Part shown: positions 6,178-41,846 of the stretch, one piece after another | How positions within the stretch are numbered: position 1 is the stretch's first letter | Layout of the letters: every line of letters starts with the position of its first letter | DNA from: Ginglymostoma cirratum | Lineage: Eukaryota | Assembly (NCBI GenBank): GCA_024137785.1 | Contig: JAHRHZ010000028.1 | Coordinates: 27,631,847 to 27,695,846, forward strand | Length of the DNA: 64,000 bases | Reading direction: 5' to 3' | Notes under the pieces: model-generated | What the model was told of the DNA's origin: nothing | What the model saw: only the letters and a program-made list of their open reading frames with translations | The model's database searches: none | Program-made: the position numbers and the translations under genes

Positions 6178-6183
6178 TTTATT
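6178..6183 (-). terminator. Candidate polyadenylation signal AATAAA for gene A
   Basis: Minus-strand AATAAA about 580 nt downstream of the stop. Confidence 0.35.
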
Positions 6184-6764: not shown

Positions 6765-6863
6765 TTACTTATCACAAAAGGAAGTAGGAAAGTCTTCTGT
6801 CCAATTGAGGGATTTGCTTGTTTCCATGTCATAGGTGATATCTTCACCATAATCTCTGAAAGA
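6765..6863 (-). CDS. Gene A exon 7 (terminal): SFRDYGEDITYDMETSKSLNWTEDFPTSFCDK*
   Basis: Phase-0 acceptor TTTTTTCACTTCTTAAAAG; aligns without gaps to the gene B terminal exon (EDITY vs EGVTY, Tyr at codon 11 in both). Confidence 0.7.
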   Translation of the reverse strand, partial: SFRDYGEDITYDMETSKSLNWTEDFPTSFCDK

Positions 6864-7449
6864 CTTTTAAGAAGTGAAAAAATTGTCATTGTCAAACCTG
6901 ATTTCAAACAGAACAAAATGCAAAGCTTATGATTGATAAAGAATTATTAAATTATACACTTCTTTGTGTTTTATCCACTTCCATAATTTAGTTGAGAATT
7001 TGAAATAATTAGGTGAGGGAATTATAGCTTTCCATTACATCATAAGAACTGTTAAACCCCAATGAAAGGTTAGCAAACTGAAACATAGGAAACATGAACT
7101 GAGGGTGAAATTTTATAGGGCCCTGAATGACATGGGCTACAAAGAGATATCTGAGGAAATCTCGAGAGAAATCGAATGAGCCCTTCCATGATGTTGAGAG
7201 CAACCAAGGCTATGGGCTTAATACTGGAAAGTGGGACTAGTGTAGATTTAGTGTAGCTTTGTTGGTGCAGACTCAATGAGCCAAAGAGCCTCTTTGGTGT
7301 GCTGTATGATTCTAACTCACACTCTCCAACAGAGTTCAAAACATTGAAATGAAATTCTCATTAAGGAGTGGCGTGAGCCTACAAATAGGGATTATTTTAT
7401 CTTTCATACCTTCATTAACTACAAGTTCCATCTCTTATTACGCAGGATT

Positions 7450-10400
7450 CTATCCTGTCACCTGTAGTTGGAAACTGGATACCAAGAATTCCAGACAAGG
7501 AAGTTAGAGCGAGTGCCTGGCAACTCAAGCTCGTTGCTTGCTCCTACAGCCCAGTGGACACCTGGCATCAATGCCTAAGGACACTCTTCAGTGCATCAAC
7601 CACACGCACCCCACATCCACAGACACTGGCATCTGACAACTGTCAGCCTCTCCATACCTTCTCTGGCCAACTTAAGGTACCCTGCTGCACTGTCATGCTG
7701 CACTTTACGGTGCACTGGTAACTATTATTGAAATGCTATCACAAGGATACTTTGCACTATGGGACCGGAAAGGAGCTTAAAGATTTGAGCAGGCTGCATC
7801 TCACGGTTTCTCACTCACTGTCATAGTGCTCATGCACTTTGAGCCTACCTGGGTACTGACAGCATCCATATCCTGCCTTGGCTTTTAGTGCAGACACAAA
7901 GCCAGGCAGCTTGTCATGGTTGTTAGCAGTCGTCAGACAAGCGAGTGGACATGTTGCTGTATGGCACCATGCTATGTCAATCTCATACCTGCATTATGTG
8001 CCAGCAGCCTACACAGCAAACACAGTTACCATAGTGTTTCAATTACATGGCCATGTCTCAACATCTGAAGGGAATAGTTCTCAGTCATGTCAAGGCTGAC
8101 CCCGTTTTGTCAGTGGGTCTTGGCACAGTAAGTCATGGGCAGCTTACAATGTCAGTCCAGAGGTTTGGGCAGGATCAGTTCATCCCTTGGGGCAATCCAT
8201 AACCGGAATCCTCTCCTCATAGGGGTTGAGAAGCCAAATGTCAGGCAGTCCACCAACCATCTTGCCTTTTTCTCACCTCTTGTGAGCTGTTCCCTCATGA
8301 AATGAGAAAAAGAGAAGGATTGAGAGAGATGAAATTGGGTGGTACCACTGTAGTTCTGGTGCAATGAAGGAAAGGTGTCCTGAGTGCATGAGTAGATAGT
8401 TCAGAGGCATACAGGGCTAGTCGTGTGGGGGAACTGGGCTGGATAAGAGTGAATGAGCGAAGAAGCTATATGCAATAGTGAGATTGGTAATGTATGAGCC
8501 TTGGTGGAAGGTGGGTCTGGTAGCAGAGACAGAGGGAGTATGAGGTAGCAGAGGGAAGATAGTGGCACTTACCCTAACAGTGTGGAGAATGTCATTGATC
8601 TTGTTCCTACAGGGATCTGGGTGGTAAATTGGGACTAGGTTGGTAGGCTCTGGAGTTGAACTCTCCTCTCCCAGTCTTGGGGAAAGAGGTTCCCTTCTCC
8701 CACGTTATCCTATCACCCAGGATCTCTAGGCCCCTGTGAAGTGGGGAACCAAATTCTCCATATCTACTATGTCAGGATGAATGTTGTAGACAAAGCTGGG
8801 CAGCTCTGGCTGTACTTGACCAGATGCACAGCATCTTTTCAGAAATACCACTTGACACCAGGGATGGCAGTCCATTCGTGGGATGTCTAGGTAGTAGCCA
8901 GTCATTATAGCTACAGTGAGTGGTGGAGTTGGGCCAGTATTGAATGAGAGGGGACCATAGACATGGAGCGGGTAATTAAAGAGGTAAGTTTGAAGTGATA
9001 GCATGAGAAAACTCCATAGCCCTCCTGGATAGAAATCCCCCATGAAACCCGACAAAATTGGCACTTAGCCAAAATGTCACAGCATTTAGCCCTCTGCTTC
9101 TTATTTCTGTATAAGTGTGTGAATGTGATAGTCAAATCTGCTTTCTAACTTTACTCCCTGCTAACCATTGATGCTGTCACTCACATTGGGATTAGGGAAT
9201 CATTTACAACCAAGAAGCACTTCACACAATAAGCTCAAAGGCAACCATCACATCTTGACTGGAAAATTAAGGAAGTGGAAAGCTTGGGTCAAGTCAGGTT
9301 TGGAAGCCCATCCAAGACATGAACTCAATTTCTGAACAGATGAAATCAGGGGTATCGGATATTGAAGTCAATTCAGTGTTTGTCCTTTGAATGCTTCTTG
9401 TCCTCACACCTCTTAAGGAGATCTCAGGTTTACAACCTTTGAGCTATACAGTCATACAGCTCAGAAGAGGCCCTTCAGCCCATCGAGTCTGCGCCGACAT
9501 ATGTACACTTGTCTCACTTTTAAGCACTTGACCCAAAGCCTTGAATATTATGACACTTCAGCTGCTCATCCATGTTCTTTATAAACCTTCTAACCACAGC
9601 AGCTGTTAGCTTGTTTTGGGGGTTGTGGCATTACAAACTGCTATGTTAGAATGTAAATCCTAGTTCAGCTCAAGCACCAGCGGGTCATGGAAACAGTGGA
9701 GTGACAAGTTGGCAGAGGAAGGTGAGGTCAGTGTGACTGAGAACAAAACATGAACAAGGAAGGGACAAGAGGAAGACAGCAAGGATATCAGGGGCCACTG
9801 GAGGTCAAGGTTAGGTAGTGTCTGCAACAGCTTCCCTCACTTGCCTTTGCTGATCTCAACCCCCAAACAGTAATTCCACATGCCCTCTGCATGACCCAAT
9901 CACTCAGTCAGGACTCTTACCTGCCAGCAGCTGAAGTAGTAACTGTGCTATCCCCTTTTGTCTTCTTTAACCGGCTCTTTCTCATTCTAGGAGGAAAAGA
10001 GCTCACAATCCAGCTGAGAAACTGAAGATGACTGGTGGACTTTTCGACATTTAGCTCCTCACCCCTCCATGAGGAGAACATCCTGGTCCTGACCGCCTGA
10101 GCGGAAGACTGCGCCCAAGCCTCTGGACTGGCATCGGAGGCTGGACTTGACTTGCTGTGCCAACACCCCCTGACCAAAGGTTATCTCCCTTGACTTGACA
10201 ATCATGACAAACCTCTTGCCTTTGTTCCTGTGCTCAATGTTAGGGCAAGACAGAAGTAAGATGAGTCTGGTATCTCTGGCTGAGGGGGTAGCATGTAAAA
10301 AGACAATACACAGCAATGCAAAGTGTGAGCTCCAGTTTGGCTCAGACTGAGTGTGCATTATGGGAGCAAGTGAAGAGCCTGGAGATGCAGCCTGATGCTG

Positions 10401-10930: not shown

Positions 10931-11165
10931 TTTGACTACAATAACATTCTGTCTATAAAATCTGATTCTCTGTAACTGATACTGCCAGACCTGCTGAATA
11001 TTTCAAGGACTTTCTCTCTTTATTTTATATTTCCAGCAAGAGCAATAATTTGGTTTGTATCTAGAGGATTATCTTATTTAGTTTTCTATCCATAAATAAA
11101 TTGGCATTTGAAATGAGGATAAGTAAATGTGAAATGTCAGATAAAGTGCTGTGTGAAATTCTTAC

Positions 11166-11221
11166 CAGATCAGTATAAGCGGGGTTAGAATCTTCCTCGG
11201 TAGGTTTCAATTCTTTTTCAC
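11166..11221 (-). CDS. Gene A exon 6: cytoplasmic GEKELKPTEEDSNPAYTDL
   Basis: 56-nt phase 1-0 exon; acceptor TTCTTAG, donor GTAAGA; same length and phase as gene B exon 50878-50933, with aligned E,T,E,S,P. Confidence 0.85.
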
Positions 11222-13815: not shown

Positions 13816-15380
13816 TATAGAGTCATACAGCATGGAATTAGACCCTTCAGTCCAGCTCATCCACACCAACCGGACATTCCAATCTGATCTAGTCCCTTTT
13901 GCCAGCATTTGGTCCATATCCCTGTAAACCCTTCCTATTCATATACCCATCCAGATGCCTTTTAAATGTTGTAATTGTAGCCTCCTCCACCACTACTTCT
14001 GGCAGCTTGTTCCATACACACATCAACCTCTGTGTGAAAAAGTTACCCCTCAGGTCCTTTTCAAATCACTCCCCTCTCATCTTAAATCTATGCCCTCTAG
14101 TTTTGGACTCCCCCACCCAAGGAAAAAGACCTTGACTATCTACCCTATCCAGGCCCCACATGATTTTATAAACCTCTATAAGGTCATCCCTCAAGTCTCT
14201 GATGCTCTAGGGAAAAAAGCCTCAGCCTATACAGCCTCTCCCTATAACTCAAACCCTCCAGTCCTGGCAACACCCTTGTAAATCTTTTCTGCACCCTCTC
14301 AGGTTTAGTAGCATTCTTCCTATTGAAGGGTGACCAGAACTGTATTCCAGTATTCCAAAAGTAGCCTCACCAATGTCTGGTACAGTTGCAATATGATACC
14401 CGATCTCCTATACTCACTGTTCTGACCAGTGAAGGCAAGCATGCCAAACGCCTTCTTCACTGTCTAACTATGAATCCACTTTCAAGGAAATATGAACCTG
14501 CATCCCTAGGTCTCTTTGTTTGGCAACGCTCTCCAGGACCCTACCATTAACTGTATAAGTCCTGCCCTGATTTGCCTTACCAATGTACAAACACCTCACA
14601 TTTATCTAAATTAAACTCCATTTGCTACTCCTCGGCCTATTGGCCCATCTCATCAATATCTGGTTGTACTCTGAGATGATCTTCTTCACTGTCCACTGCA
14701 CCAACTATTTTGGTGTCATCTGCAAACTCATTAACTGTACCTCCTGTATTCACATCCAAATCGTTTATGTAAACGATGAAAATCAGTGGAGCCAGCACTG
14801 ATCCCTATGGCACACCTCTGGCCACAGGCCTCCAGTCCAAAAACCCTCTGTCACCAATTTCTGTCTCTTACCTTCAAGCCAAATTTGATCCAATTGGCTA
14901 GCTCCCTCTGTATCCCATGTGACCTAACCTTACTATCCAGTCTACCCTACAGAACCTTGTTGAATGGAACCTACATGCTGAAGTCCATGTAGACAATGTC
15001 TACTGCTCTGCCTTCGTCAATCTTCTTTGCTATCTCGTCAAAAAACTCAATCGAGTTAATGAGATATGATTTCCCATGCAACAATCCATGCTGACTATCC
15101 CTAATTGGCCCTTGCCTTTCCAAATGCATGTAAATTCTATCCTTCAGAAACTCTTTCAACAAATTACCCACCAATTACGTCAGGCTGTCAGGTCTACAGT
15201 TCTCCGACTTTTTCTTACTGTCTTTCTTAAATAATGGCACCACATTAGCCAACCTCCAGTCTTTTGGCACCTCACCTGTGGCTATCAATGACACAAATAT
15301 CTCAGCAAGAGGCCCAGCCATCTCTTCCCTAACTTCTCACAAATTTCTGGAGAACACCTGATCAAGTATGGAGGATTTTC
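13816..15380 (-). mobile_element. CR1-clade LINE, 5'-truncated (RT + 3' UTR)
   Basis: ORF 14971-15174 SQHGLLHGKSYLINSIEFFDE...VDIVYMDFS; FADDTK motif; typical 3' end. Confidence 0.9.
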
Positions 15381-17410: not shown

Positions 17411-17471
17411 CTTTCATTTTTGAAGCTGATTGCTCTCTGAGATTCAGCAGGCGGTACTGTTATTGTAGGAG
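17411..17471 (-). CDS. Gene A exon 4: stalk PPTITVPPAESQRAISFKNE(S)
   Basis: 61-nt phase 1-2 exon; acceptor TATTTTTACAG, donor AG|GTATAT; Pro/Thr-rich; bridges D2 to the phase-2 TM exon in frame. Confidence 0.8.
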
Positions 17472-18775: not shown

Positions 18776-21611
18776 GAGAGGAAAAAACAGCCCACTGACA
18801 TAATGATTCACAGTGACACTCCTCAGACTAAACCCTTCCATGTTTGCCTTCTCTAGTTGTTATCTCTCCCATAGTTTGTACATGTCTTTTTTTTAACTAA
18901 AAGCAAAAAAGTTTGGGTAGAGCGACTATTCATTTTTATTTATTCTTTGTTGGGCTTTGCTGTTGCCCATCCTTAATTATTCTTGAGAAGGTGGTGGTTA
19001 AGTCCATATATATTACATAGGAGAAAGTAGCTTCTGAAAACCATTTTTGCATTGATGGTGGTGCTCACCAGCAAGAAGCTAGAGAAAAAGTCGATCTTAC
19101 TTGATCTTACTTGATCTAGCTTGCAGCAATGTTGGGCCTGAATTTCAATTTAAATTGAATTTTACTTTATCATGTTGTCTTCAGGAAAACTGAAGAAACC
19201 ATGTACCATGTACACTTTATTGGATTGCTCAAATAACAACTCGTTGAAGAGTGACAGTGACAAAAATGTCAATGGGGCCAAATTAATTAACAATTTAGCT
19301 GTAAATCATTACAGATTTGATTGTGATGACTGTCTGTGCAGAATTCATACTGAAATGATATGGATCCCATGAGGATCTGACAATGTCTACATCCTCATGT
19401 AAGTTGTACATTATCATACACCTGATTGTAATAACAGAATAGGTAAGACTGTTTGTTTGAACTTTAAATTAATGAAATGAATGAATTCAATTTAAGTATT
19501 AACTTTACAATATCAAAAAAATCCCCAGACTATTCTATATTCCATATAAGTATTTGCTCAATTCAAACTTTTCTTTCAAACTGCAAAAGTGTTTTATCAG
19601 AGAGATGAGGAGAAAATGTTTCCATTTGTGGGAAAGTCCAAAAATAAGGGCCATTAACCTAAGGGTGTCAGAAAATAAAACACAATAAAGTATTTAGGAG
19701 AAACATCATTATCCAGATATTGTCACCCTGCGCCCACTCTGCTGCATTCTGGCACAGGGGTAAGAACCCAATGATGATAGATACTAAATATGACCCATGT
19801 ATGTTAGCAAAATTCACACTAAATGAATTTATTATGAACTAACCAGAGTAGTGACCATTGTGCCATTTCAATATAATTTTGAGGAGGAAAAATTGAGGAA
19901 ATAAGACTGTCTGAAATTGCAATTAAGCCAATCTGAGAAATAAAGTCATCTGCCAGTTTGTTTACATCAGCAGAGACACTTCTAACTATAGCGAACCATT
20001 GTAGAAATTGTGCCTTTCTCCCTCTTGTCAAATATCTTGGTTTCAAGCATTTCCAAATCAACATAAGAAACAGGGTAAGCCTAGTTTACGTCTGTCCTAA
20101 CAAGCTATCTGAATAGTGGCCTTAAAAGAACATCTGTAGGATAATTATGCCTCAATCTTTCCTAAAATCTCTGAGAGCTATTCCCACTCCACCTTTGGTG
20201 CTGGTGTCCTCAACTGTCAAGAGCCTATGCTCTTAAAATCCCACCCATAAACACCTCCACTTCTCCACTTATCTCTCTTCCTTTAAGATGCTCCTTCAAA
20301 TCTGCTTCTTTGACCAAACCTGTGGCCACTTACTCTGATAGAACAATATATACGGCTTTATATCAAAGTCTGCTTCTGCTTTAGTTGTGTCAACATTACA
20401 GACTACCGCCTGTACTCTACCCACATTTCTATGTTTATGCTCCTCTGTACAGCTTTGGGGCATTTTTTCTATCTTTAAGATAATCAATTATTGTGGTACT
20501 GGAGAGGTGCTAATATTGCTGTATTAATAATCCAGAGACCAAATCTAATGTTCTGGAGATATGAGTTTATAATCCCATAATGGCAGGTGTTGTTATCTGA
20601 ATTTTTTAAAGTCATTTTTTCACTTGTGGGATTTGGGTGCCACTGGCTGGCCAGCACTTATTGTCCCATCCCTTTTGCTCTTGAGAAGGTGAGCTGCTTC
20701 CTTGAATTGCTACAGTCCATATGCTGTAGGTTGACCCACAATGCCATTAGGAAAGGAATTCCAGAATTTGACCTAGTGATGGTGAAGGAATGATGATATA
20801 TTTCCAAGTCGGCATGGTAGTATAATGGCAGCCCTGTTGGGTTCGCTAATCTCCTTCAGGGAAGGAAATCTGCTGTCTGTATTTGGCCTACATATGAGTC
20901 CAGACCTGCAACATAGTGGTTGACTCTTAACTGCTGGCACGCATCATCCTGACTTGAAAGTATGTCACAATTCCTTGACTGTGACTGGATCAAACCTTTG
21001 GAATTCCCTCCCTAATGACACTGTGTGTGCACCTACACCACTTGGATTGTCACAGTGCAGGGAGGTTGATCACTAGCAGCTTCACAAGGGCAATTTTAGA
21101 TGCTGACCTTGCCAATGATGCTCACAAACCATGCTTAAATAAATAAATATGTTTGGCCTACTGTTCTCCTTTTGATTTTTGGTACCACTGGGGCACTTTA
21201 CCCATCGGTCACTGCATTATAGGACTCAAATTGTACCAACATCTGGCCTCTGTGGAGAATTTTTGGAGAAGCTTTTTTATGCATTCCAGAAATCTGCCGA
21301 GCTTTTGCTGACATGTAAAGCATTGGAGGGTAGAAAGGTTGGAGTGGGGAGAAGAACATTGGCCTCTTCCTATGCCATAAATCTTTCTCTGCTTCTATGT
21401 AGTGCCTGACTCACGAGACAGAATGTAGCGTTTCCTAGTGATTGAGATGGGCCTCAGTAGATTCAGTTTCTAGCCTCAAAATCCCAACAGATCAGATGAA
21501 TTGCAAACAAATAATATCTGTCCCAACAGTTCTTCTTAACAGAACATTTAGCATTTTATTTAAATATGTAGAAGCTTCTTAAGAAGAAGAAGAAATTAAC
21601 ATCTGTCTTAC

Positions 21612-21935
21612 GTTCAAAAATGATCAGTTGTAAAGGGTCCATTCTGTCATATCCAAAGATTGTTATTCCACACCAGTAAATTCCCTTATCCTCCATAGAT
21701 AGTTGGGTGATGGTCACTGTAAACACCCCAATGGTTTGGTTATCCATAGCCATTATCCTTCCACCGCTGTTTGGACTCTGTTTTTGCGTTCCAACTATCA
21801 CAATACACGATTTCCTGTCTGATCCCCTACACAGGTATTTTTCATGGTTCTTGTAATATGACACTTGATACTGACATTGTATGGTGACAGCGTCTCCTAA
21901 GGTCCCATGCACTTGCCTTAGCCCAGTTAATCCAG
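21612..21935 (-). CDS. Gene A exon 3: Ig-V domain D2 (CD300/pIgR type)
   Basis: 324-nt phase 1-1 exon; acceptor TTTCTTCTTGAAG, donor GTAAGA; GDAVTIQC...KYLCRGSDRKSC...EDKGIYWCG. Confidence 0.93.
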
Positions 21936-22461
21936 CTTCAAGAAGAAAGAACAACATATAACTGTTTAACGTCAAGCAGAATACATGCTAGTAAAACAGT
22001 GACAAGTATTGCAGAATCTAGGAATTTTATAGCACAGAAATGGTTTAATTTGGCCCGTCATTTCCATTCTGGTTATCCGAAAGCAAATTGTCCGCTTAAT
22101 TCATTCCTTTTTTCCAAGTATGTTCAGGTTCTTACTGCTTTACCAGTTAAACAAAGATCTTATACACTGACAGTATTAGATAACTTATTTCGCTTCTGGT
22201 CAAAACAGTTCACTCCTTTCCTGAAATCAGAAAATCCTGGAAATGCTCAGCAGGCAACAGCATATGCAAGTCAAGTGAATAATGTTTCAGATTAATGACC
22301 ATCAGAATTCTGAAAGGCTGCAGATCTGAAACATTAACTCTATTTCACCTTCTGCAGATGTTGTCAGAGCTGTGAATATTTTCAGCTTTTTCAGTTTTTA
22401 TTCCACATTTCTAGAATCGTCAGTATTCCCCTTTTTAATTCGCCTCAGCAGAAAGAATATA

Positions 22462-23070
22462 TGTGGAGTATAAGAGTAATGAAGTCTTACTGCAATCGTA
22501 CAAGGTGCTGGTGAGACCACTTGTGGAGCATTCTGAGCATTTTTGGTCTCCTGATTTAAGGAAAGATATTATTTCATTGGATGGAATTCAGAGAAGATTC
22601 ACTGGGATGATCCCTGGTATGGAGGGATGATCTTATGAGCAGAGGCTAAACAGGTTAGGATTCTACTCATTGGAATTTAGAAGAATGAGATGTGATCTCC
22701 TGAAACATATAGAATTCTTAAGGGACTTGATAGGGTAAATGCTGAGAAGATGCTTCCCCTCATGGGAGAGTCTAGGACCAGACGGAATTGTCTCAGCATA
22801 AGTGGGCACCAATTTAAGACTGAGATGAGGAGTATTCGTTCTCTCAAAGGGTTGTGAGTCTTTGAAATTCCTTGGCACAGAGAGCTGTGGGAGCAGAGTA
22901 CTTGTGCACATTTAAAGTTGAGGTAAATGGTTTCTTGGTTCGTAAGGGAATCAAGGGTTGTAGGGAAAAGGTAGGAAAGTGAATGTGACGAATATCAGAT
23001 CAGCCATGATCCTATTCAATGACAGAACAGACTCGAGGGTTCAAGTGGCCAACTCCTGTTCCCATTTCTG
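22462..23070 (+). mobile_element. CR1 LINE 3' fragment
   Basis: LLQSYKVLVRP...QRRFTGMIPGMEG..YEQRL...EFRRMR. Confidence 0.85.
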
Positions 23071-23680
23071 GATAGTTAGAGAACCAATTCCATGTTCCAC
23101 TTCAGCTTTGAACACTAAAACATCTTGGCCATCTCTTGCTTCATTTATAACCAAACGAAACGTCACAAAAATCTGCAGCGGGTAAATCAGTGTGAGAGGA
23201 AAGAAGAATCATGATAAAGTCAAAATCACAAAATGTCAGGTCTAAGCTAAATCAGACATACACACACATCTTGTAGCTTCTCGAACAGTGAAACTTAGAT
23301 TATTTGTGTATTATTTCTATTTTAGTTTGTTTTTTAATCATGCTATCTATTTACATTTTGTGCTTTAAAAACTTTGCAACACAACAACTGCCAGCTCATT
23401 GAACCTGTATCAGCTGATCAGTCCTTCACAAGAAATATCAGCTTCCCCATGGGGTCTGAAGGTTGTCAACATAAACCTGTCCACACAGAGAGCAGCTACG
23501 GACAGAGTTGAAGAGTGGATCAATATTTGAAAGTCTTTTTGTTTGTGTAAGCATTTTCCAACAGAAATTCCCCACTGAACACTACTTTAAAACTAAATCA
23601 CCAAGTTTATGCTGAAAATTTGAAATAAAAACAGAAAAATGGCAACGAAAATCAGCAGGCCTGGCACCTGTGGAGAAAGA

Positions 23681-24391
23681 CTAAAGAACTGATCGTCGAC
23701 TTCAGAAAGAAAGGAGGTGAACACGTCCCCATCTACATCAATGGAACTGAGGTTGAGAGGGTGAAGAGCATCAAGTTCCTCAGCGTGACGATAACTGATG
23801 ACCTGTCCTGGACTTCCCACGTAAATGTGACAGTTAAGAAGGCACAACAATGCCTCTTCTTCCTTAGGCAGCTCAGGAAATTTGGCATGTCCCTAAAGTC
23901 CCTCACCAACCTCTACTGACACACAAATGAATGCATACTGTCTGGGTGCATAATGGCCTGGTATGGCAATTTCTCTGCCCAGGACCGTAAGAAACTGCAG
24001 AAGGTAGTGTGCACAGCCCAGACCATCGCGGAAGCCAACCTTCCATCCATGGACTATTTATACACTCGCTGCTGTGGGAAGACATTTAAAATTGTCAAAG
24101 ATCCATCGCACCCTGGTAATGCTCTCCTACAACATCTTCCGACAGGCAGAAGATACAGAAGCCTGAACACATGCACAAGCAGGTTCAGGAACAGCGTATT
24201 TCCGGCCATTATCAAACTGTTGAATGGACTCTAGCCTCAAATAATGTAACCTGCAATGTAAGCTGTATGCCTCAAAGTTTTTTTGATCTAGACATCCTTT
24301 GCTTGCTGTGATCTGTCTGTACCACTCGTAAACAAAGCTTTTCACTGTATTTTGGTCCATGCGACAATAAGTCAATCAAATCAAATCAATC
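23681..24391 (+). mobile_element. Rex1/Babar-clade LINE 3' part with (CAAAT)n tail, inserted into a fold-back element
   Basis: TKELIVDFRK...INGTEVERVKSIKFL...LSWTSH...KKAQQCLFFLRQLRKFG; ORF 23953-24234 AWYGN..AQDRKKLQKVV..DPSHPG..LPTGRRYRS. Confidence 0.88.
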
Positions 24392-25309
24392 AAAGAAACA
24401 GAATTAACCTTTCGAGTCTGAGATCACTCTTCTTCAGACATGCCAGCTCACTTCTGAAGAAAAGTCTTATCAGACTTGCAATGCTAATTCTGTTTCTGTC
24501 TCCTCAGGTGAAGCCAGACCTGCTGAGTTTCTCCAGCACATTCTGTTTTGCTTCATCAGTTTTAATTCCTTCAGTATTTTGACTTCCCCTTCAGCGTTTG
24601 ATGTTTTTATTATCTTTTTACACTAATTTATCACCCGATACAGCCTTAAAATTACAGAGTAGATTTAAATCTTCGCGACCGAGGGCAGATAAATGACCCA
24701 CCCCTTGTGGTAGAATGGAAGTTTGCCTGAAATAGTTCTCCTCTTTCAACTTCACTTTGAAATCCATTCTCTTCTTTGGGACATGCATGACTATCAGGTT
24801 TGCCTGGCCATTTGAATGATCTGGTTTTCTTCTACTTTGATCTTCCTTCTCCAGATTTATTCTACCTCAACACTATTGCTGTATTCTCCCAGAGGGAAAC
24901 AAGAGTAAATACTTGGAAATGAATGTACTGGATATACTGGGACTCTATTTTGAGGTCTACAATACAGGTCAGACCAATATATATTATTTTCAAGTTTTAC
25001 TTTTTTTTTCTGTTCTTCCTCTGGCTGAATTTGAGAATTTGACCATGATTCCAATTTCTCCCACCTTCAATTTCGTGATTCTTTCCTGATCGTGTTCTTC
25101 CCTCTATTTCTATCTCTCTCTAATGGACTCTTTGCAGATGCCAGCAACTGTCTAAAGTATGTTACTTCCCATCTCATTTTCTGAAGGAGCTTCAACCCTT
25201 TTTTCCAGCTTTCATCATTTCCATTACATTTGCTTGATTGACGCCACCTCCCACATCAAACCATAAATATCCTTCTTCCACAGTTATGTGAATGCATTGT
25301 ACACCGTGC

Positions 25310-25770
25310 AGAAAAGATTCATGAAATGGACTTCAGGAATGAACATTTTAGCATGGAGATAAAGTTGAGAAATTGGCACTGTCATTCTTGGAGAATATAA
25401 AGTGAGAGGAGATTTGAGAGAATTGTTCAAAATTACGAGGGCTCTGGACAGAGTAGATAAAGAAAAATGGTTCCCATTCATGGCAGGATTGAGAATGAGG
25501 GGGCACATATTTAAGGTAATTGGGAAAAGATGCAATGGGGGACATGGGCAGGAATCTTTACACACAATGAGTATGAAAGAACAGGAGTGCAATGCCTGAA
25601 AGTGTGTTGGATCCAGGTTCAATTGAGGCTTTTAGGAGGGAATTGGATTATTATCTGAAAAGATAGAATGTGCAGGATTACAGGAAAGGTACTACATGAA
25701 TTGCTCATTCAGAGATCCAGTGTATTTATGGTGGGCTGAATAGCCTCTTTCTACTGTAACTACCCTGTAA
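25310..25770 (+). mobile_element. CR1 LINE 3' fragment
   Basis: ORF 25402-25599 RGDLRELFKI..LDRVDKEKWFP..RGHIFK. Confidence 0.8.
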
Positions 25771-26231
25771 ATCTTTATGTACATTGCTATTCTTGTGTTC
25801 TTTTCTCACCCTGTCCTTTCTTCATGCAACAGTAACACTGTACCCTGTTTACCTTTCAAAGTTCAATTCTCTGGAAGGTTCTACACAAAACAGTATCTGT
25901 TTTCTCTGCATAGACTCTGACTATATATCCGCTTTCTAATCATGTAGCACCACCAGTCAAATGTGTGGGGTGTTGATTTATCTTCCATACACAGTTTAGG
26001 TCCAAGAAATCTTTATCTTCTGAAGAAGTATCTGTTTCTCTCGCCACAGATGCTGCCAGGCCTGCTGAGTTTCTCCAGCATTCACCATGTTTGTTTTAAA
26101 CCTTTTATTAATTGAACAAATCTAAGAACTTTTTCTGTTTAAACAGGTTACAACAACAGTAAATTGTTCATTTATTGGAATTATTACACTGTGCTTGAAG
26201 TCAATAAATGGTGATTAATAACTCAGCTTAC

Positions 26232-26561
26232 CTGTGAGAACATTCAATTTTACACAAGCCATTTCATCTTTGCCCAGCCTTGTTATCCCACACCAATACC
26301 ATCCTGCGTCTTCCAGTGATAATTGCTGCATTTTTACTGAAAATATTCCAATGGTTTGATTGTCCATAATGAACAGTCTACTGGATCTTTCCTGCTGTAC
26401 TTCTGTAGTGGATGCCAACACGATGCATGAATAACTCATTTTTCCTTTACACCAATACTTCTCAGAATCTCGGCTACTTGCTATGTTGTACTGGCAGTTC
26501 ACAGTGATGGACTCTCCCAACCTTCCGTTCACCTCGCTGGGTGCCGTGAGTCCGTATGATC
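26232..26561 (-). CDS. Gene A exon 2: Ig-V domain D1 (CD300/pIgR type)
   Basis: 330-nt phase 1-1 exon; acceptor TTTCTGTCCTGACAG, donor GTAAGC; GESITVNC...KYWCKGKMSYSC...EDAGWYWCG with the family's extra C-C' cysteine pair. Confidence 0.95.
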
Positions 26562-27959
26562 CTGTCAGGACAGAAAGAAACATGCTGTGTTAAGATTTGA
26601 AAAATGCCTGGCTGATGGAATGTCACAACCATCGGTCATGTAGCTTAGAGGCTCTTGTGAAGCAATGGTAATGTCCCTATCGCTGTGCTGGAAGATCCAT
26701 ATTGAAGTTAACGCAGAGCTAATAGCCTAGTGGTATTATCAGGAGACTGTTAATCCAGAAACTCAGCGAATGTTCCAGGGACCTGGGTTCAAATTCCTCA
26801 ATGATAGATGGTGGAATTTGAATTCAGTAACAAATCTAGATATATAAGGATGAACATGAAACTATTGTCAGGGAGAAAAAACAATTGTCTTGTTCACTAA
26901 CATCATTCAGGGTCGGAAATCTATCATCTTTGCCTGGTCTGGCCTTCATGTGACTCCAGACCTGCATCATGGTGGTTGACACTTAACTGCCCTCTGGGCA
27001 ATTAGGAATTGGCAATAAATGCTGCTCTAGCCAGAAATGCCCAAAACTGTCAGTGAATAAATGTCCCACCTGTCACTGGGATATACCATAACATGTACCA
27101 GCAGATTGATTCACAAATGCATTTTTATAATCTGACTTAAGGTGAGCTTGACAAGACCTCTAAATGGCTATGGTGGAAATTCTCTGACTGGCCTTGCTGA
27201 AATGGTCCTGTTACATGTTGAATTTCTAAGTCAGCTTATTTCATACCTTGAAGTGAATGCATTGTTTGTATTGGAGCATTATTCTGAGGAACACAGATCA
27301 GTGTGCATCATTTGCAAGTTTCACTTGTTTTTCCTTCGGTGCAGTATTCAACTTGAAAGCCTTATTAACTTGGTTACATTCAGCCAGAGGGTCTGCTCCC
27401 ATTAACATGGAAAATTGAAAGACAAATTATCTTTAAAAATTGACACATGCCTTTGCTCTACTATTTAACTCAATAGCTATTTTGTTTTGTAGGGGAAGAA
27501 CAAGCGAATAGGTGAGTATTCAGTCGGACTAATTTTCATTTGTTTTGGGTGTGAATAAGGCAGTTACTGGATTAAAATTTTGTGCCTCGTTCCCATTGAC
27601 AAGTGGGTCTTCACCATGTTTCCTGAGGCTCTGAAATGGATGGTCCAGGAGACTGCCAGAAACTTGATATCAGTAAGGCTCTAATGCAATTGTAGACTTC
27701 CAATGGGTGGCACAATTGTCACACAATTACCTCTTTGGATTGGTACTTGGTATTGAGTAGTCCTAGAGTCATACAGCACGAAAACAGGCCCTTCGGTCCA
27801 ACCAGTCCATGCCAACCATAATCCCAAACTATACTAGTCCCACCTGCCTGCTCCTGGCCTATATCCCTCCAAATCTTCCCTATTCATGTTCTTATCCAAA
27901 TGTCTTTTAAATGTTGTAATTGTACCCACACCCACCACTTCTTAAAGGGACTAATCTAA

Positions 27960-32654: not shown

Positions 32655-35600
32655 AGAACATAAGAACCAGAAGCAGGAGTAGGCCATCTGACTCTTCGAG
32701 TCCACTCCACCACTAAATAAGTTCATGGTTGATCTTTTCATGGCCTGAGCTCAACTTATTCACCCTAACCCTTAATTCATAGAATTCCCACAGTATGGCA
32801 GCAGGCCATTCAGCCCAACAAGTCCACACTGACTCTCTGAAGGGTATCCCACTCAGATGCATCACCCTATCCTGCATTTCCTATGGTTGATTCACCTAAC
32901 CTACACATGATGGGCAATTTAGCATGGCCAGTTCACCTAACTTACACATACTTTGGACTGTGGGAGGAAACCAGAGCACCCAGTGGAAACCCATGCAGAC
33001 ACAGGAAGAACATACAGATAATTGCCCAAGGTTGGAATCAAACCCAGGTCCCTGGCGCTGTGAGGCAGCAGTGCTAACCACTGGGCCACCATGCTGCCCT
33101 TTCCTTTACAGCTCAAAAATGATCTATCCTAGCTTTAAAAACATTCAATGTGAAAGCCTCAACTACTTCACTGGGCAGTGAAGTTTCATAGATTCACAAT
33201 CCTTTGGCTGAAGAAGTTCCTCCTCAATTCAGTCCTAAATCTGTTTCCCCTAATTTTGAGGCTATGCCCTCTTGTTATAGTTTCACCTGCCAGTGGAAAC
33301 ACCCTCCCTGCTTCTATCTTATCTATCCCCTTCATAATTGTATATGCTTCTATAGGATCCCCCCTCATTCTTCTAAATTCCAATGAATATAATCCCAGTC
33401 TATTCAGCTTCTCCCCTTAAGCCAACCCTCTTAACTCTGGGATCAACCTAGTGAATCTCCTCTGCACCCCCTCCAGTGCCAGTGCATCCTTTCACGAGTA
33501 AGGAGACTATTCCAGGTGTGGCCTCGCCTGCACCCTTTACAGCTATAACATAAACCCCCTGCTTTTAGACTCAATCCCTCTAGCAATGAAGGACAAAATT
33601 CCATTTGCCTTCTTAATTACCAGTTGTACCAACAAACCAACCCTCAGCCCAGCAGCATGCCGCAATTTTTTACTGTTCAAATAATATGCCTTTTTATTCC
33701 TACCAAAATGGATGAATTCACATTTATCAACATTGTACTCCATCTGCCAGACCTTCGCCCGCTCACTTAAACTATCTCTATCCCCCAGCAAACTTCCAGA
33801 GTCCTCTGCACACTCTGCTTTACCACTCATCTTAGTGTCATCCGCAAACATTGACCCACTACACATTGTCCCCAACTCCAAATCATCTATGTAAATTATA
33901 AACAATTGCAGTCCCAGCATTGATCCCTGAGGCACACCGCTAGTCACATTGCCAGCCAGAAAAGCACTCATTTACCCCACTCTCTGCTTCCTGTTAGTTA
34001 ACCAATCCTCTATCCATGCTAAAACATTGTGTGTAACACAGAGCACCTTTATCTTATACAGCAGCCTTTTGTGTGGCACCTTGTCGAATTCCTTTTGGAA
34101 ATCTAGATACACCACATCTACTGGGCTCCTGTTGTCCACTGTGCTCGTAATGTCTCCACAGAATTCCAGTAAGCTAGTTAAATATGACCTGCCTTTCATG
34201 AACCCATGCTGCGTCCACCCAATGGGACAATTTATACCTAGATGTCTTGCTATTTCTTCCTTGATGATAGATTCAAACATTCTTCCCACTACAGAAGTTA
34301 AGCTAACTGGTTTATAATTCCCTATCAGAGATAAAAGGTACTGCAGATGCCGGAGAATCCGAGATAACACGGTGTGGGGCTGGATGAACACAGCAGGCCA
34401 AGCAGCATCATAGGAGCAGGAAAGCTTGACGTTTCGGGCCTAGACCCTTGGGTCTAGGCCNNNNNNNNNNNNNNNNNNNNNNNNNNNNNNNNNNNNNNNN
34501 NNNNNNNNNNNNNNNNNNNNNNNNNNNNNNNNNNNNNNNNNNNNNNNNNNNNNNNNNNNNNNNNNNNNNNNNNNNNNNNNNNNNNNNNNNNNNNNNNNNN
34601 NNNNNNNNNNNNNNNNNNNNNNNNNNNNNNNNNNNNNNNNNNNNNNNNNNNNNNNNNNNNNNNNNNNNNNNNNNNNNNNNNNNNNNNNNNNNNNNNNNNN
34701 NNNNNNNNNNNNNNNNNNNNNNNNNNNNNNNNNNNNNNNNNNNNNNNNNNNNNNNNNNNNNNNNNNNNNNNNNNNNNNNNNNNNNNNNNNNNNNNNNNNN
34801 NNNNNNNNNNNNNNNNNNNNNNNNNNNNNNNNNNNNNNNNNNNNNNNNNNNNNNNNNNNNTTTCCCACTGGTCTTTGCCATTTTGTATGCCTTGTCTTTC
34901 AATTTGATAGCCTGCCTTATTTCCTTACACATCCGTGGCTGATTAACCCTTTTCCTACCGTCCTTTCTTTTCACTGATATATACTTCTGCTGAGCACTTT
35001 GAAAAATTGCTTTGAAAGTCCTCCATTGTTTATGAACTGTGCTTCCGTAAAGTCTTCACTTCCAGTCTACTTCAGCCAACTCCTCCCTCATCTTGTTGTG
35101 GTCTCCTTTGTTTAAGGATAGAACCCTGGTAAACAAACGACCGTACTGTGATTGCTCCTTCCAAGAAGATCCCTAACTATGAGATCATTAATCATTCCTG
35201 TCTCAGTACACAGGACCAGATGTACGGTAGATTGCTCCCTCATCGGTTCCATTCCATACTGTTCAAAGCAATGATCGCGGATACATTCAATGAACTCCTC
35301 CACAAGGCTTCCTTGACTGACCTGGTTTGACCAATCGACATGTAGATCAAAATCCCCCATGATAATTGCCGTGCCATTTTTGTAGGCATTAGTTATTTCT
35401 TTGTTTAATGCCCGCCCCAATGTGATGTTATTATTTGGTGGCCTATAGACTACGCCTATCAGTGACCTTTTCTCCTTAGAATTTCTAATTTTCACCTAAA
35501 TGGATTCAACCTTATTCTCATAGAACCTATATCATCTCTCACTACTGCCCTGATGTCATCCTTAATATCAGAGCTACACTACCCCCCCTTACCTTCCTGT

Positions 35601-35830
35601 CTGTCCTTCTGAATAGTCTGATACCCCTGGATATTTAATTCCCAGTTATGACCATCCTGCAACCGTGTCTCCATAATAGTTGCCAAATCATACTCATTTA
35701 CAATGATTTGTGCCGTTAACTCATCTACCTTGTTTTGAATGCTACAAGCATTCAGGTAACATGCCTTTAATGGTAGTTTTAATACCATCTTTTTGAATTT
35801 TAACTCCTCTGTTAATAGAGTCGGGATTAA
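32655..35830 (-). mobile_element. Long CR1 LINE (endonuclease + RT) spanning the gap, with nested HE1 SINE (32778-33099) and Penelope end (34326-34460)
   Basis: YLNACSIQNK, GVVYRPP, IIMGDF (APE); QHGFMKGRS, DVVYLDFQK.FDKVPH, GVPQGS, FADDTK (RT). Confidence 0.93.
34461..34860. other. Assembly gap (400 N) in gene A intron 1
   Basis: Run of n. Confidence 1.
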
Positions 35831-36096
35831 GGAACTCATTCAGTTTGGAAATATGTAATTAATGGAATGCCACAAGCATCAGTCCTAGGGCATCAATAAT
35901 TTACCATCTATATTAATAACTCGGAGTGGAGTGCAGAATACCCTACGAATAATAAAAATAAATAAATCATTGGGATTACATGCATTTTACAATTTATACT
36001 TCCTGCTTAACACTCAAAACCACAATTGTCTGCAAACCTCTTTCCTGATCACATCTAGTCCACAAACTACTCTGAGCTAATTCCTCCAGAGAGAAT

Positions 36097-36582: not shown

Positions 36583-37073
36583 TACAGGAAGGATGTGGAA
36601 GCATTGGAAAAGGTGCAGAGGAGATTTACCAGGATGTTGCCTGGTCTGGAGCGAAGGTCTTATGAGGAAAGACTGAGGGACTTGGGTCTGTTCTCATTGG
36701 AGAGAAGAAGGCTGAGAGGGGATTTAATAGAGACCTACAAAATGATCAGAGGATTAGATAGGGTGGACAGTGAGAGTCTTTTTCCAAGGATGATGACGTC
36801 GGCTAGTACGAGGGGGCATAGCTGCAAATTGAGGGGTGATAGATTTAAGACAGATGTCAGAGGCAGGTTCTTTACTCAGAGAGTGGTAAGGGCGTGGAAT
36901 GCCCTGCCTGCCAATGTAGTTAACTCAGCCACATTAGGGGCATTTAAACAGTCCTTGGATAAGCATATGGATGATGATGGGATAGTGTAGGGGGATGGGC
37001 TTAGATTAGTTCACAGGTCGGCGCAACATCGAGGGCCGAAGGGCCTGTTCTGCGCTGTATTGTTCTATGTTCT
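36583..37073 (+). mobile_element. Young CR1 3' fragment with uninterrupted ORF end and TTCTATG-type tail
   Basis: ORF 36595-36990 ALEKVQRRFTRMLPGL..YEERL..LFSLERRRLRGDLIETYKM; CpGs retained. Confidence 0.92.
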
Positions 37074-38184: not shown

Positions 38185-38400
38185 GGGGTCAGTCAGATCA
38201 GTTGGCTGGATAGCTGGTTTTCAATGCAGAGTAATTCCAACAGTGTGGGTTCACTTCGTGTCACTGGCTCAGGCTATCATGAAGGACTATCCTTCTTTAA
38301 CCTCTCCCCTTGCTTGAGGCATGGTGACCTCCAGGTTAAACCACCACCAGTTGTCTCTCTCTGATGAGACAGCAGCCTTCTGGGATTATAGTGACTTTGC
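38185..38400 (+). mobile_element. tRNA-headed SINE family (copies also ~11610-11790 -, 17930-18095 -, 59670-59790 +, 61725-61925 +)
   Basis: Shared CTCTCCCCTTGCYTGAGGCATGGTGACC..CAGGTTAAACCACCACCAGT core. Confidence 0.7.
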
Positions 38401-39042
38401 TTTTCTCCATCACTAAGTTCAATATCCATATTTTCTACCAGTAACACAGGCACTATTTGAAGCTTGTTCTGTAACAGCTCACCGAGTGAGTTTGCTAATA
38501 CCTCTTTGCACCATAACAACTACAAGAAAAGTCATGGAAACAACAGGCCATGCACCACCTTGCCTTGGACATATGGTCATACGTTGACAATAACTTGAAG
38601 GTCCTACACACCACCAGTGTGGGAGGGTCATTACTATGAGGTCTGCCAGATACAAGGAAAATTTCTCAAGGCACCTACACTTGGGTGATGAATCCAAAAT
38701 TTATGACGTTGCCAACATCCTGAAACAAATAATTTAACAAAATATACTGGCAAAGATATCGTCAGAAAGGAGTCCTGTTCTTTTCCCTGCAGTTTGCTGC
38801 AGTACACATGGAAGATTCAGTTATAGGTTTCAGTGGGGGTGGGCAGGGGCTGGAGGTGGTGGGTGATGGGAGGGAGATGTTAGTTAGCTTAGTTGGCCAT
38901 GTATCTATAATGTGGTCCAGTACAATGTCAATAGTGCAAGTTCAATCCTTGTAATGGCTGTACAGTTCAAGCAGCCCTTCCTCCTCCTCATCTTATAGAG
39001 TCATAGAGGTCTACAGCACAGGAAAAGACCTTTCAGCCCATT

Positions 39043-39291
39043 AAACAAGGAAAAAAACCCAAAGAACGGTGGAATCTGGAAGTGAGAAGCAAAGTCAGAA
39101 ATTGCTGGAAAAACTCAGCAAATCAGGCAGCACCAGCGGAGAGAAAGTAGAGACAACATTTCAGGTCCAGTGACCCTTCTCCAGACCCTCTGCAGTTCTG
39201 AAGAAGGGTCAGTGGAACCAGAACATTAACTCTGCTCTCTCCACAGATGCTGCCAAGCCTGCTGAGATTTTCTAGCAATTTCTGATTTTGC
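39043..39291. repeat. Fold-back element with exact 11-bp TSD (TTCAGCCCATT) inside a CR1 tail
   Basis: TSD 39032-39042 / 39292-39302; inverted arms with two decayed hammerhead cores. Confidence 0.85.
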
Positions 39292-39844
39292 TTCAGCCCA
39301 TTGAGTCTGCACAAGTCATAAACTATTCTAACCCCATTTCCCATCACTTGGCCTGTAGCCTTGTATGCCTTGGCATCATAAGTGCATGTCTAAATACTTT
39401 TTAAATTTTAGAGGGTTTAGCTTCTACTGCTTTAAAGGCAGTGAGTTCGAGATTCCTACCATGATCTGTGTGAAAAAATTTTCCTCACATTTGCTTTGAG
39501 CCTCTTGCCCCATGCCTTAAAATTATGCACCCAGCTCCCTCTACCAAGGGGAAATATTCCTTCCTGTTGACTCCATCTATGTCCCTAATAATTTTATAAA
39601 TCTCAATTATGTCTCCCTCAGTCTCCTCTGCTCTAGCTATGTATAACCAATTGTCTCTGTCTAATGGAAAGAGATATGTATGTGCTTTGTGGACAATGGG
39701 TCCTTAATAGTACAATTACTTTTGTGAAAGTGGTTTGTAACAATTTCTGTCTGTGCTATCAAAGTATGTGATCAGTTTAGATTCAGATTGCAAATTGTTG
39801 ATCGCAAATTTATCAATAATCTGTCGATAGTGTCATAGCATTTC

Positions 39845-40165
39845 ATAGACTCCCTACAGTGTGGAAACAGGCCATTCAGCCCAACAAGTCCATACCAACC
39901 CTCAGAGCATCCCACCCAGACCCATCCCAGCTTAACCCACCTAATCTACACATCCCTGAACACTATGGGCAATTTAGCATGGCCAATCCACCTAACCTGC
40001 ACATCTTTGGACTGTGGAAGGAAACCGGAGTACCCGGAGGAAACCCACGCAGACACGGGGAGAATGTGCAAGCTCCACACCGACAGTCACCGGAGGCTGG
40101 AATCCAACCCAGGGCCCTGGTGCTGTGAGGCAGCAGTGCTAACCACTGTGCCACTGTGCCACCCC
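39845..40165 (-). mobile_element. HE1-like SINE
   Basis: Minus-strand head GGGGTGGCACAGTGGCACAGTGGTTAGCACTGCTGCCTCACAGC. Confidence 0.9.
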
Positions 40166-41797
40166 ATTTATTAGTTCGGTGTACCAGATCGCTGGGGCTG
40201 AAAATATGTAGGTTCTTTTCTCCACTGTAATAATAGCCTGTTAGTGATACATTTGATCCCATTGGAATTCCATGGGCCAGCAACACTACACAGAAAGGTT
40301 GGGTGCTGTGTCTGTATCAACACAACTGAGGTATCTTGGTGGACACAAGGCTGCAAACTGTGACTTTGTTGTTGAACTGCAGAGTACATTCCTGGTCCCA
40401 GAAAGGAGGTTTTAAAAAAAACTTTTACTTGCTACAGCTTTACCCAACTGATGGCTCTCTTGCCTACCCTCCAGAAGAAAAGCCCTGCTTCAAAAAATAT
40501 ATTACAGTGTCAGGTAGTCAGTTCTTTATACTATTCTTTGGTCGGATGTAGGTGTAGCTCGCTGGAGCAGCATTTCTTACTCATGCCCAATTGCTGATGA
40601 GTTAGTGGCGTTGAATTGCCATCCTGAGCTGCCTCAGTCCGCAGGGGTCGGCATACCTACACAGCAGATAGGAAGGGACTTCCAGGATTTGACCCAGAAA
40701 CACTGAAGGAACAGCGATATGCTCCAAGTCAGAATGATTTTGGCTGGGAGAGGAACTTACAGGTAGTGGTTTTCCCCTGCGTCTGCTGCCCTTGTCCTCC
40801 AAATAGTGGAGGTCATGGGTTTAGAAGATGCTGTAAAAGGAGTATTCATGTTACCAGTAACATCTTCACCTGAGATGGCCCACTTTGAAGGGTCAGGTTT
40901 TGCTCAGCCCTCAGTCCCGCCTGCCAAACTTCAACATGCTGCTCAAACAGAAACAGAAATTGTTCGAAAAGCTCAGCAGGTCTGGCAGGATCTGTGAAGA
41001 GAAGTCAGAGTTAACGTTTTGGAGTCCAGTGACCGTTCCTTAGGACATTCCTCTGATGCAGCAAAAGCTGGAACAAGAAGAATCTGGCACAAATTCCAAT
41101 TGTGCCTGCTCCAGTAGTAGCCAAATACCATGGAAACATTTCTACTGCTGCAAACAAAACCTCCAAAATTTCTCTTGAAATGGTAGGAACCAGAAGAATC
41201 TTGAAAAGCAGAAAGAATTAAAAAATTATGTGAGAAGGCTTTTTGATTTAATGGTAGCTGATTAAGAAAGTTCGTAATGATCACATTAATTAGATTTTTC
41301 ATAGAAAAACTAAGTGACATGCTGAATAAAGCTGACAAATAAAAGGCCAAGAAATCCTTGGCTGGAAAGCCATCAGCACTGTAACAATTTTGCGATTCTG
41401 TGATATGAATCTTTGACTTGCAACAGGTAAATGCTGACCACATTCTCAGTTATTTTAACAAACACCTAACACAACTGGCTGAGTGAAGACTCTCATTACA
41501 TCTTAATCATTAACATTCCAATATCGTTGTAATTTCCACAATGACAAATTGATTATATGCATAATATTCTCCCGTCTATTGAATATACACTGAATATCTT
41601 CCTGCATTGTGAAAATCAAACTTTACAGAAAGCATTAAGCTTTAAGAGCACATCTCTATATAGCTATAGACAATAAAACATTGCACATTCCATCAAATAC
41701 AAGTAGCGTTTAAAACAGAACCTTTTTTACAAATGCCTGAAGAGAAAAGTAAAAAGGTAATCTCTCCAATTTGAATTTAGTCTATTTGTTTGCTTAC

Positions 41798-41846
41798 CCG
41801 ATAATGAAACTGCAATGAGGATGATAATAAATTCAATTACTTTCAT
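41798..41846 (-). CDS. Gene A (CD300/pIgR-like receptor) exon 1: signal peptide MKVIEFIIILIAVSLS
   Basis: ATG with A at -3 (TTAATCATG); hydrophobic 16-aa leader; phase-1 donor G|GTAAGC; joins in frame to the Ig exon at 26561, giving ...VSLSGSYG/LTAP (plausible cleavage site). Confidence 0.85.

Follow-up and report, generated by a model that had tools for sequence, protein, structure and literature searches.

How sharks transport their immunoglobulins (Ig) is a question that a 2026 review raises for cartilaginous fishes, which it describes as lacking the polymeric Ig receptor pIgR (PMC13337447); zero PIGR homologues were reported from shark genomes by Akula et al. (2014; PMC4016189), and the J chain exists in sharks (PMC10801876). 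The question is sharpened by a gene of the nurse shark Ginglymostoma cirratum, here called gene A, which encodes a receptor with two Ig variable-type (V) domains, D1 and D2. It lies on the minus strand of a 64,000-nucleotide window (contig JAHRHZ010000028.1, positions 27,631,847 to 27,695,846). An earlier reading of this DNA from its letters alone (the sequence-only reading) had stated that no clear pIgR orthologue is established in cartilaginous fish, in agreement with the literature cited above, and had considered a pIgR-like transport role for gene A, with Ig or lipid as possible ligands. Is gene A the shark pIgR, or is it a receptor of another kind? Our analysis indicates that gene A most likely does not act as a shark pIgR. 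With moderate confidence we propose, from its sequence features, that gene A is a functional and highly transcribed type I receptor of the CD300/pIgR superfamily, which would serve as a lipid sensor of the CD300LF or PIGRL type with internalisation in the style of scavenger or engulfment receptors.

When tblastn was run with two open V-like frames, three minus-strand V exons were identified at 26.5, 21.9 and 63.5 kb; the former two belong to gene A and the third to a neighbouring gene, gene B. The splice sites of gene A were read directly from the DNA, guided by orthologous proteins. Its exons were used one at a time in similarity searches, and the joined open reading frame (ORF) was checked for length, stops and residue positions. 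This gave the following exons:

41846-41798, minus strand: exon 1, coding part of 49 nt, leader MKVIEFIIILIAVSLS(G); donor G/GTAAGC, phase 1.
26561-26232, minus strand: exon 2, 330 nt, V domain D1; phase 1 to phase 1.
21935-21612, minus strand: exon 3, 324 nt, V domain D2; phase 1 to phase 1.
17471-17411, minus strand: exon 4, 61 nt, stalk (P)PTITVPPAESQRAISFKNE(S); phase 1 to phase 2, aligning to Stegostoma.
13214-13108, minus strand: exon 5, 107 nt, transmembrane (TM) segment followed by the stop-transfer sequence RYKKK; aligning to shark orthologues.
11221-11166, minus strand: exon 6, 56 nt, (G)EKELKPTEEDSNPAYTDL, with NPAYTDL at 11186-11166; 89% identical to Stegostoma.
6863-6765, minus strand: exon 7, coding part of 99 nt, SFRDYGEDITYDMETSKSLNWTEDFPTSFCDK; acceptor aaaag/tct, phase 0, stop codon TAA at 6767-6765.
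6842-6822, minus strand: DITYDME, within exon 7, aligned to orthologues.

The seven exons total 1026 nt, which encode 341 aa and a single stop at the end. Each of the six introns has GT-AG borders, and their phases (1, 1, 1, 2, 1, 0) are mutually consistent. The product consists, in order, of a leader, D1, D2, a stalk, an uncharged TM segment and a 60-aa tail, giving a type I layout, and thereby has the arrangement of leader, two V domains, stalk, TM segment and short tail of the teleost-type two-domain pIgR and PIGRL proteins. Both V domains matched the Pfam V-set (E 7.7e-16 for D1 and 1.6e-13 for D2), as did the V exon of gene B. D1 carries four framework cysteines and one extra cysteine in its G strand, whereas the TM segment NFYVVVVPALGIVVVLFLVVAIFA contains zero charged residues. 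The leader recurs in the Stegostoma and Heptranchias orthologues and is identical in Stegostoma. The sequence-only reading had described a seven-exon, phase-consistent ORF of 341 aa encoding a two-V type I receptor of the CD300/pIgR superfamily with an uncharged TM segment. Its splice sites and phases, together with the RNA data for exons 1-4, proved this model correct to the residue, and the description of the receptor is borne out by the exon model and the V-set matches. For exon 7, an alternative acceptor (cag/a at 6855) was considered and discarded, as in phase 0 it leads to RLW followed by a stop, and the alignment of orthologues places the true acceptor at 6863.

Support from RNA was obtained from a public polyA run with the same species label (run X7), which was mapped on positions 21500-27499. 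The joint between the D1 and D2 exons (26232/21935) was covered by 436 reads with 172 different start positions, and its plus-strand CT..AC corresponds to a minus-strand GT..AG intron. At the D1 acceptor, 300 reads were clipped with an agreement of 1; the 30 clipped letters are unique in the window and correspond to 41799-41828, the end of the leader exon. Similarly, 424 reads were clipped at the D2 donor with an agreement of 1, and their letters, also unique in the window, match 17442-17471, where the stalk exon begins. This joint and these clipped-read ends show that exons 1-4 are spliced together at the predicted sites and that one transcript holds both D1 and D2, which settles in the affirmative the earlier proposal that both domains belong to a single gene. 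Read depth was approximately 460 over D1 and 570 over D2, and 1-5 in the intron. Approximately 3,000 of the 12.9 million reads fell on the 654 nt of V exon, amounting to about 350 reads per kb per million, and the transcript level of gene A in this library is high. On the same stretch, runs X8, X9 and X13 showed zero exon coverage, X9 and X13 carrying intronic repeats only.

An exhaustive protein search returned 2537 relatives at E<=0.001, many of them with 2-12 V domains, and gene A has orthologues in at least ten other shark species, with one found in each. The orthologues were drawn from Rhincodon, Stegostoma, Chiloscyllium, Cetorhinus, Mustelus, two species of Scyliorhinus (S. torazame and S. 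canicula), Heterodontus and Heptranchias; their accessions include XP_059509194.1 (Stegostoma), XP_067863879.1 (Heptranchias), GCB70550.1 (S. torazame) and XP_072338018.1. They share with gene A the leader, D1, D2, the stalk, the TM segment and the tail blocks, and the V domains, stalk, TM and tail blocks are kept from Hexanchiformes to Orectolobiformes. Identity to gene A in the V domains is 93-95% in the whale shark and 86-88% in the zebra shark, values in keeping with an orectolobiform origin of the window. In RefSeq and GenBank these proteins carry the automatic labels 'polymeric immunoglobulin receptor-like' or 'uncharacterized protein', and in the literature searched for CD300 or pIgR-like receptors of sharks neither gene A nor any of these orthologues is the subject of a study. 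Gene A is hence new to the literature as a studied gene, but computed orthologues are already in databases and the superfamily is a known one.

In order of score, a per-domain search of PDB placed both domains closest to CD300LF. The best solved relative was mouse CD300LF, with 80.4 bits for D1 and 70.1 bits for D2, and the scores for D1 and D2, respectively, were 60.9 and 48.6 bits for human CD300LF, 51.1 and 39.6 bits for NKp44, 48.9 and 50.9 bits for CD300A, 45.4 and 44.0 bits for human pIgR D1, 25 and 30 bits for FCMR, and 24 and 23 bits for TREM1. Multi-domain pIgR chains outscore CD300LF solely through the summing of four domains. Both domains also contain the second (C-C') disulfide of the CD300 type together with the (K)YWC motif, in the form KYWC-x7-C in D1 and KYLC-x7-C in D2. 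The loops by which pIgR D1 contacts its ligand (CDR1, …NRHTRKYWC…, and CDR3; CDR, complementarity-determining region) are unmatched in gene A. The CDR1 of human pIgR D1 reads …PPTSVNRHTRKYWC, and D1 of gene A has NIASSRDSEKYWC and a CDR3 of the CD300LF type. Other hallmarks of the CD300 family are not found in gene A, which has two V exons joined in RNA instead of a single V domain, and neither a tail with an immunoreceptor tyrosine-based inhibitory motif (ITIM) nor a charged TM residue.

The CDR3 likeness extends to the residues that bind ligand in CD300lf. In that protein, the phosphocholine pocket is formed by Cys36-Cys44, Tyr34, Trp89, Gln41, Arg42 and Met100, and Ca2+ is held by the carbonyls of Lys94 and Gly96 and by the side chain of Asp98 (PMC6166816). 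We located the equivalent positions in D1 and D2 through their ungapped BLASTP alignments with a closely related CD300lf-like protein from a mammal, and the mouse CD300lf sequence was taken from the PDB search. The predicted loops are:

26260-26292, minus strand: D1 CDR3, C-GITRL-G-K-D-E-M (equivalents of G96, D98 and M100), predicted Ca2+/phosphocholine loop of the CD300LF type.
21640-21672, minus strand: D2 CDR3, C-GITIF-G-Y-D-R-M, predicted to have the same pocket signature.

Aligned to one another, the loops read YWC-GITRL-G-K-D-E-M in D1, YWC-GITIF-G-Y-D-R-M in D2 and YWC-GITKG-G-L-D-P-M in CD300lf. D1 and D2 each retain Tyr34, Cys36-Cys44, Trp89, Gly96, Asp98 and Met100, corresponding to six of the eight pocket positions in each domain, and at the positions of Gln41 and Arg42 in the CC' loop D2 has Arg and Lys. 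In every shark orthologue, both D1 and D2 carry the signature C-x5-G-x-D-x-M (one orthologue has a deletion of 1 aa); it also occurs in ray and chimaera relatives, and was found in only 20 of the 221 family proteins fetched. All the pIgR domains from rabbit, bat, bird, Polypterus and minnow lack it, as do V domains of the gene B type. No other clue to the type of ligand is as specific as this pocket signature, which, at the level of sequence, favours a lipid or phospho-headgroup over Ig. The lipid ligand allowed for by the sequence-only reading is thus plausible, with both V domains keeping residues of the CD300LF phosphocholine/Ca2+ pocket.

In maximum-likelihood trees of single V domains, in which the backbone was unresolved, shark D1 domains formed a clade (support 97/95), the core shark D2 domains formed another (99/92) that was sister to ray domains, and the gene-A-type domains of sharks, rays and chimaera grouped together (89/94). 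These domains showed no supported link to pIgR D1, pIgR D5 or the tetrapod CD300-like clade, and neither a grouping of D1 with pIgR D1 nor one of D2 with pIgR D5 was recovered. Approximately unbiased (AU) tests kept a tree uniting D1 with tetrapod pIgR D1 (p 0.19) and marginally rejected one uniting D2 with pIgR D5 (p 0.03). Orthology to pIgR is hence unsupported, though the trees by themselves would still allow it. D1 and D2 go back to an old duplication, which possibly took place within the cartilaginous fishes.

The cytoplasmic tail following RYKKK reads GEKELKPTEEDSNPAYTDL / SFRDYGEDITYDMETSKSLNWTEDFPTSFCDK. It is acidic, 60 aa long and contains four tyrosines, two of which are supplied by exon 7 (RDYGED and DITYDME). 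Reading of exons 6 and 7 confirmed the earlier description of a tail with DSNPAYTDL, in which an NPxY motif overlaps a YxxL motif, and with no consensus ITIM. NPAYTDL lies approximately 22 residues from the membrane, and the same overlap is seen in the distal motif of LRP1, NPVYATL. No ITIM, ITSM (immunoreceptor tyrosine-based switch motif) or ITAM (immunoreceptor tyrosine-based activation motif) was found in the tail of gene A, which has no match to (I/V/L/S)xYxx(L/V/I); the sequences ITYDM, ITYDI and ITYDV were considered as ITIM-like and ruled out, as the residue at +3 is Glu, Ala or Asp. Among the other shark orthologues, YxxL/M is kept in seven of ten and at least one of NPxY and YxxL/M in eight of ten, both Scyliorhinus species having NSLY in place of NPxY, and the tyrosine of D-I-[T/R]-Y-D is invariant (10/10). 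The tail showed no similarity to the rabbit, bat and minnow pIgR tails and matched shark orthologues only.

At its C-terminal end, gene A stops 9-10 codons ahead of the end of the orthologues, and the tyrosine of their DFPTYI is a serine in the nurse shark. The orthologues have Gln at the position of the stop codon (TAA, 6767-6765), and the later codons (stretch 6741-6767) still resemble the C-terminus of the orthologues (KHDQKEPI). The early stop reflects either a sequence error or a tail that was shortened recently, by 9-10 residues, in the nurse shark.

Taken together with known receptors, gene A resembles CD300LF/CLM-1 in the extra C-C' disulfide, the YWC motif, the uncharged TM segment, a tyrosine-bearing tail and the type I topology, but differs from it in having two V domains instead of one and in a tail of unrelated sequence. 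The tail of CD300LF has ITIM-type and YxxM motifs, neither of which is present in gene A. With pIgR it shares the V superfamily, the type I topology and tyrosine-based motifs of the sorting type in the tail, and its two-V layout is that of teleost pIgR; on the other hand, tetrapod pIgR has 4-5 domains (teleost pIgR two), the tails are unrelated and the D1 loops are unmatched. The teleost PIGRL/SITR and skate MDIR receptors are comparable as lineage-specific multigene families with V domains of the CD300/pIgR/TREM-like kind. Kortum et al. are said to have described, in 2014, zebrafish PIGRLs with two V domains and phospholipid binding. Skate MDIRs combine V with C2/I-set domains and have an ITIM or a charged TM residue, whereas gene A has V domains only, in the order V-V, and neither of these features. 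CD300/TREM/pIgR-like domains have been on record in skate MDIR genes since 2006 (cited in PMC3031540). Finally, LDLR, LRP1 and CED-1/MEGF10 are uptake receptors with NPxY/YxxL motifs, but their ectodomains are unrelated to that of gene A, which also lacks the aromatic or hydrophobic residue at -5.

If gene A is indeed a lipid sensor, each V domain would hold a phospho-headgroup or another lipid-type ligand in a CD300LF-like, Ca2+-holding pocket formed by CDR3 and CC', and the two pockets in tandem would allow avid binding to dead cells, membranes or particles of lipid. The tail tyrosines might then report that ligand is bound, the membrane-proximal NPAY/YTDL acting as a putative clathrin-adaptor or phosphotyrosine-binding (PTB) docking signal for uptake, and the invariant tyrosine of DITYD as a candidate phospho-docking site for a partner with a Src homology 2 (SH2) domain.

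Several observations weigh against this proposal. D1 has Ser and Tyr at the positions of Gln41 and Arg42, so that its pocket may be altered. In the tail, which the sequence-only reading had called endocytosis-type, NPAYTDL is present in the nurse shark, but only five of the ten other shark orthologues retain NPxY and the first tail tyrosine is replaced in two of ten (NPVD in Mustelus and NPVF in Heterodontus), and the invariant element is instead D-I-[T/R]-Y-D. The best-kept tail motif, DITYD[M/I/V]E, fits no adaptor consensus known to us. Moreover, NPAY has no hydrophobic residue at -5, where LDLR-type FxNPxY signals typically have one. In the gene model, the predicted junctions from the leader to D1, D1 to D2 and D2 to the stalk were seen in reads, and the three distal ones, from stalk to TM, TM to tail and tail to the last exon, were placed by canonical sites, phase and orthologue alignment. 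As a rival explanation, gene A may serve leukocytes for signalling or regulation rather than uptake: Src/Syk-family kinases would phosphorylate its tail tyrosines, which would recruit SH2 or PTB adaptors and so tune activation, for example through the single acidic-flanked YTDL in a hemITAM-like manner. The invariant tyrosine is that of DITYD, in an acidic context resembling a kinase substrate, and not the NPxY tyrosine, the adjoining gene B has the ITIM-type sequences VTYATV and TEYSTV, and mammalian CD300LF uses several tyrosine motifs to signal (Alvarez-Errico 2007, cited in PMC10768021). We nevertheless regard this as a somewhat unlikely explanation, as gene A is without ITIM, ITSM, ITAM or a charged TM residue and its motifs fit no defined SH2 consensus; signalling and uptake can, besides, coexist in one receptor. 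It is very improbable that gene A, as part of a rapidly evolving receptor cluster, is under weak constraint or in decay and that its tail motifs arose by chance. Such decay would fit the stop codon placed 9-10 codons early, the replacement of the PTY(I) tyrosine by serine in the nurse shark, the variability of NPxY/YxxL and the ease with which short tyrosine motifs arise, but the ORF is intact, strongly expressed and correctly spliced, and the V domains, stalk, TM and tail blocks are conserved between Hexanchiformes and Orectolobiformes.

The alternative that bears directly on the opening question is that gene A is the functional counterpart of pIgR in sharks, binding polymeric IgM with J chain at the basolateral surface of epithelia, being endocytosed through a tyrosine signal and undergoing transcytosis and perhaps cleavage. 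Two V domains with a TM segment and a short tail make up the layout of teleost pIgR, PDB entry 5f1s is among the matches, the superfamily is the same and RefSeq calls the orthologues 'pIgR-like'. Orthology is stable among sharks with one gene per species, mRNA is abundant, a tyrosine-based signal exists in the tail, sharks have a J chain but no known pIgR (PMC4016189, PMC13337447, PMC10801876), and a clade of D1 with tetrapod pIgR D1 survives the AU test (p 0.19). However, both domains are nearer to CD300LF than to pIgR D1, whose CDR1 and CDR3 are unmatched, and the CD300LF pocket motif that gene A carries was found in no pIgR domain examined. The tail is unrelated to pIgR tails, the AU test speaks against an affinity of D2 with pIgR D5 (p 0.03), D1 and D2 cluster together and with ray and chimaera domains (89/94), and the number of domains varies among the orthologues, S. 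torazame having three V domains. A role as pIgR counterpart is therefore quite improbable, and the pIgR-like transport role considered by the sequence-only reading is not upheld by the domain scores, the pocket motif, the tail or the trees. The CD300LF- or PIGRL-type lipid sensor remains our preferred explanation of gene A.

Comparison with the orthologues also revealed properties of the database models and of the neighbouring gene. The best match of gene A, the zebra shark RefSeq protein 'polymeric immunoglobulin receptor-like', is a fusion of the orthologues of genes B and A. Most RefSeq orthologue models likewise fuse two adjacent CD300-like genes (B with A, or A with the next gene), resulting in two or three TM segments and in V domains of different clades. 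The exons of gene B (46351-63710, minus strand) correspond in alignment to the zebra shark fusion protein over its N-terminal half, covering the V domain, the TM segment (100% identical) and the tail, which contains the ITIM-type motifs VTYATV and TEYSTV. Domain number is labile in this group: the third V domain of S. torazame is a recent duplicate of D2, and ray proteins (Leucoraja, Hemitrygon) have 2-4 near-identical domains of the D2 type, one skate isoform being without a TM segment. The extra G-strand cysteine of D1 (EMACVKL, 26250-26252, minus strand), which is probably unpaired, is common to the whale shark and zebra shark and is replaced by Ser, Asp or Pro in the other orthologues examined.

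Outside the coding exons, the following features were recorded at the two ends of gene A and in its introns:

41946-41948, minus strand: further ATG, in frame with that of the leader and 34 codons upstream of it; its context is weak (t at -3).
6183 and 5778 (5773-6183), minus strand: candidate polyadenylation signals AATAAA, 582 and 987 nt past the stop.
34461-34860, no strand: assembly gap (N) within intron 1 (41797-26562), inside one copy of a long interspersed nuclear element (LINE).
35112-35495, minus strand: LINE endonuclease ORF, Exo_endo_phos_2 (PF14529), upstream of the gap.
33972-34391, minus strand: LINE reverse transcriptase (RT) ORF, RVT_1 profile positions 7-110, downstream of the gap.
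33543-33971, minus strand: LINE RT ORF, RVT_1 profile positions 116-197, downstream of the gap.

The Stegostoma RefSeq model reads through the stretch holding the upstream ATG (41948), and the AG at 41951-41953, just before this ATG, is the acceptor in the zebra shark RefSeq model that fuses gene B to gene A. Both flanks of the gap belong to one minus-strand LINE, because the endonuclease and RT parts occur in the right order and orientation. The orthologues have zero residues between leader and D1 and RNA is spliced across the gap, thus the gap leaves the coding sequence intact. Intron 1 and intron 4 both harbour LINE fragments with endonuclease and RT-like ORFs (36595-36990, plus strand; 33543-35839 and 14975-15281, minus strand). 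In addition, short intronic repeats at 26040-26080, 26900-27010 and 23700-24550 were very deep in the RNA-derived contigs of other runs, with many clipped reads; these are probably SINE-like (short interspersed nuclear element) or other dispersed elements transcribed elsewhere.

In conclusion, the pIgR/CD300 superfamily does have two-V members in sharks that are conserved and highly expressed, although reviews up to 2026 report no pIgR in these animals (PMC4016189, PMC13337447). Comparison with gene A showed that the orthologue models in databases are mostly fusions of neighbouring genes, whereas gene A itself now has an exact model, supported by RNA for exons 1-4 and ready for cloning, and offers a concrete pIgR candidate that can probably be excluded. 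There is a slim chance that the Ig-transport or Ig-uptake receptor so far missing from cartilaginous fishes is gene A, or was its ancestor, moving J-chain IgM across epithelia or clearing it; if so, gene A would mark the stage at which pIgR arose from a lipid-binding CD300-like receptor. More probably, its value would be that of an early tandem-domain receptor, predicted to sense lipids and equipped with an unusual ITIM-less tail.

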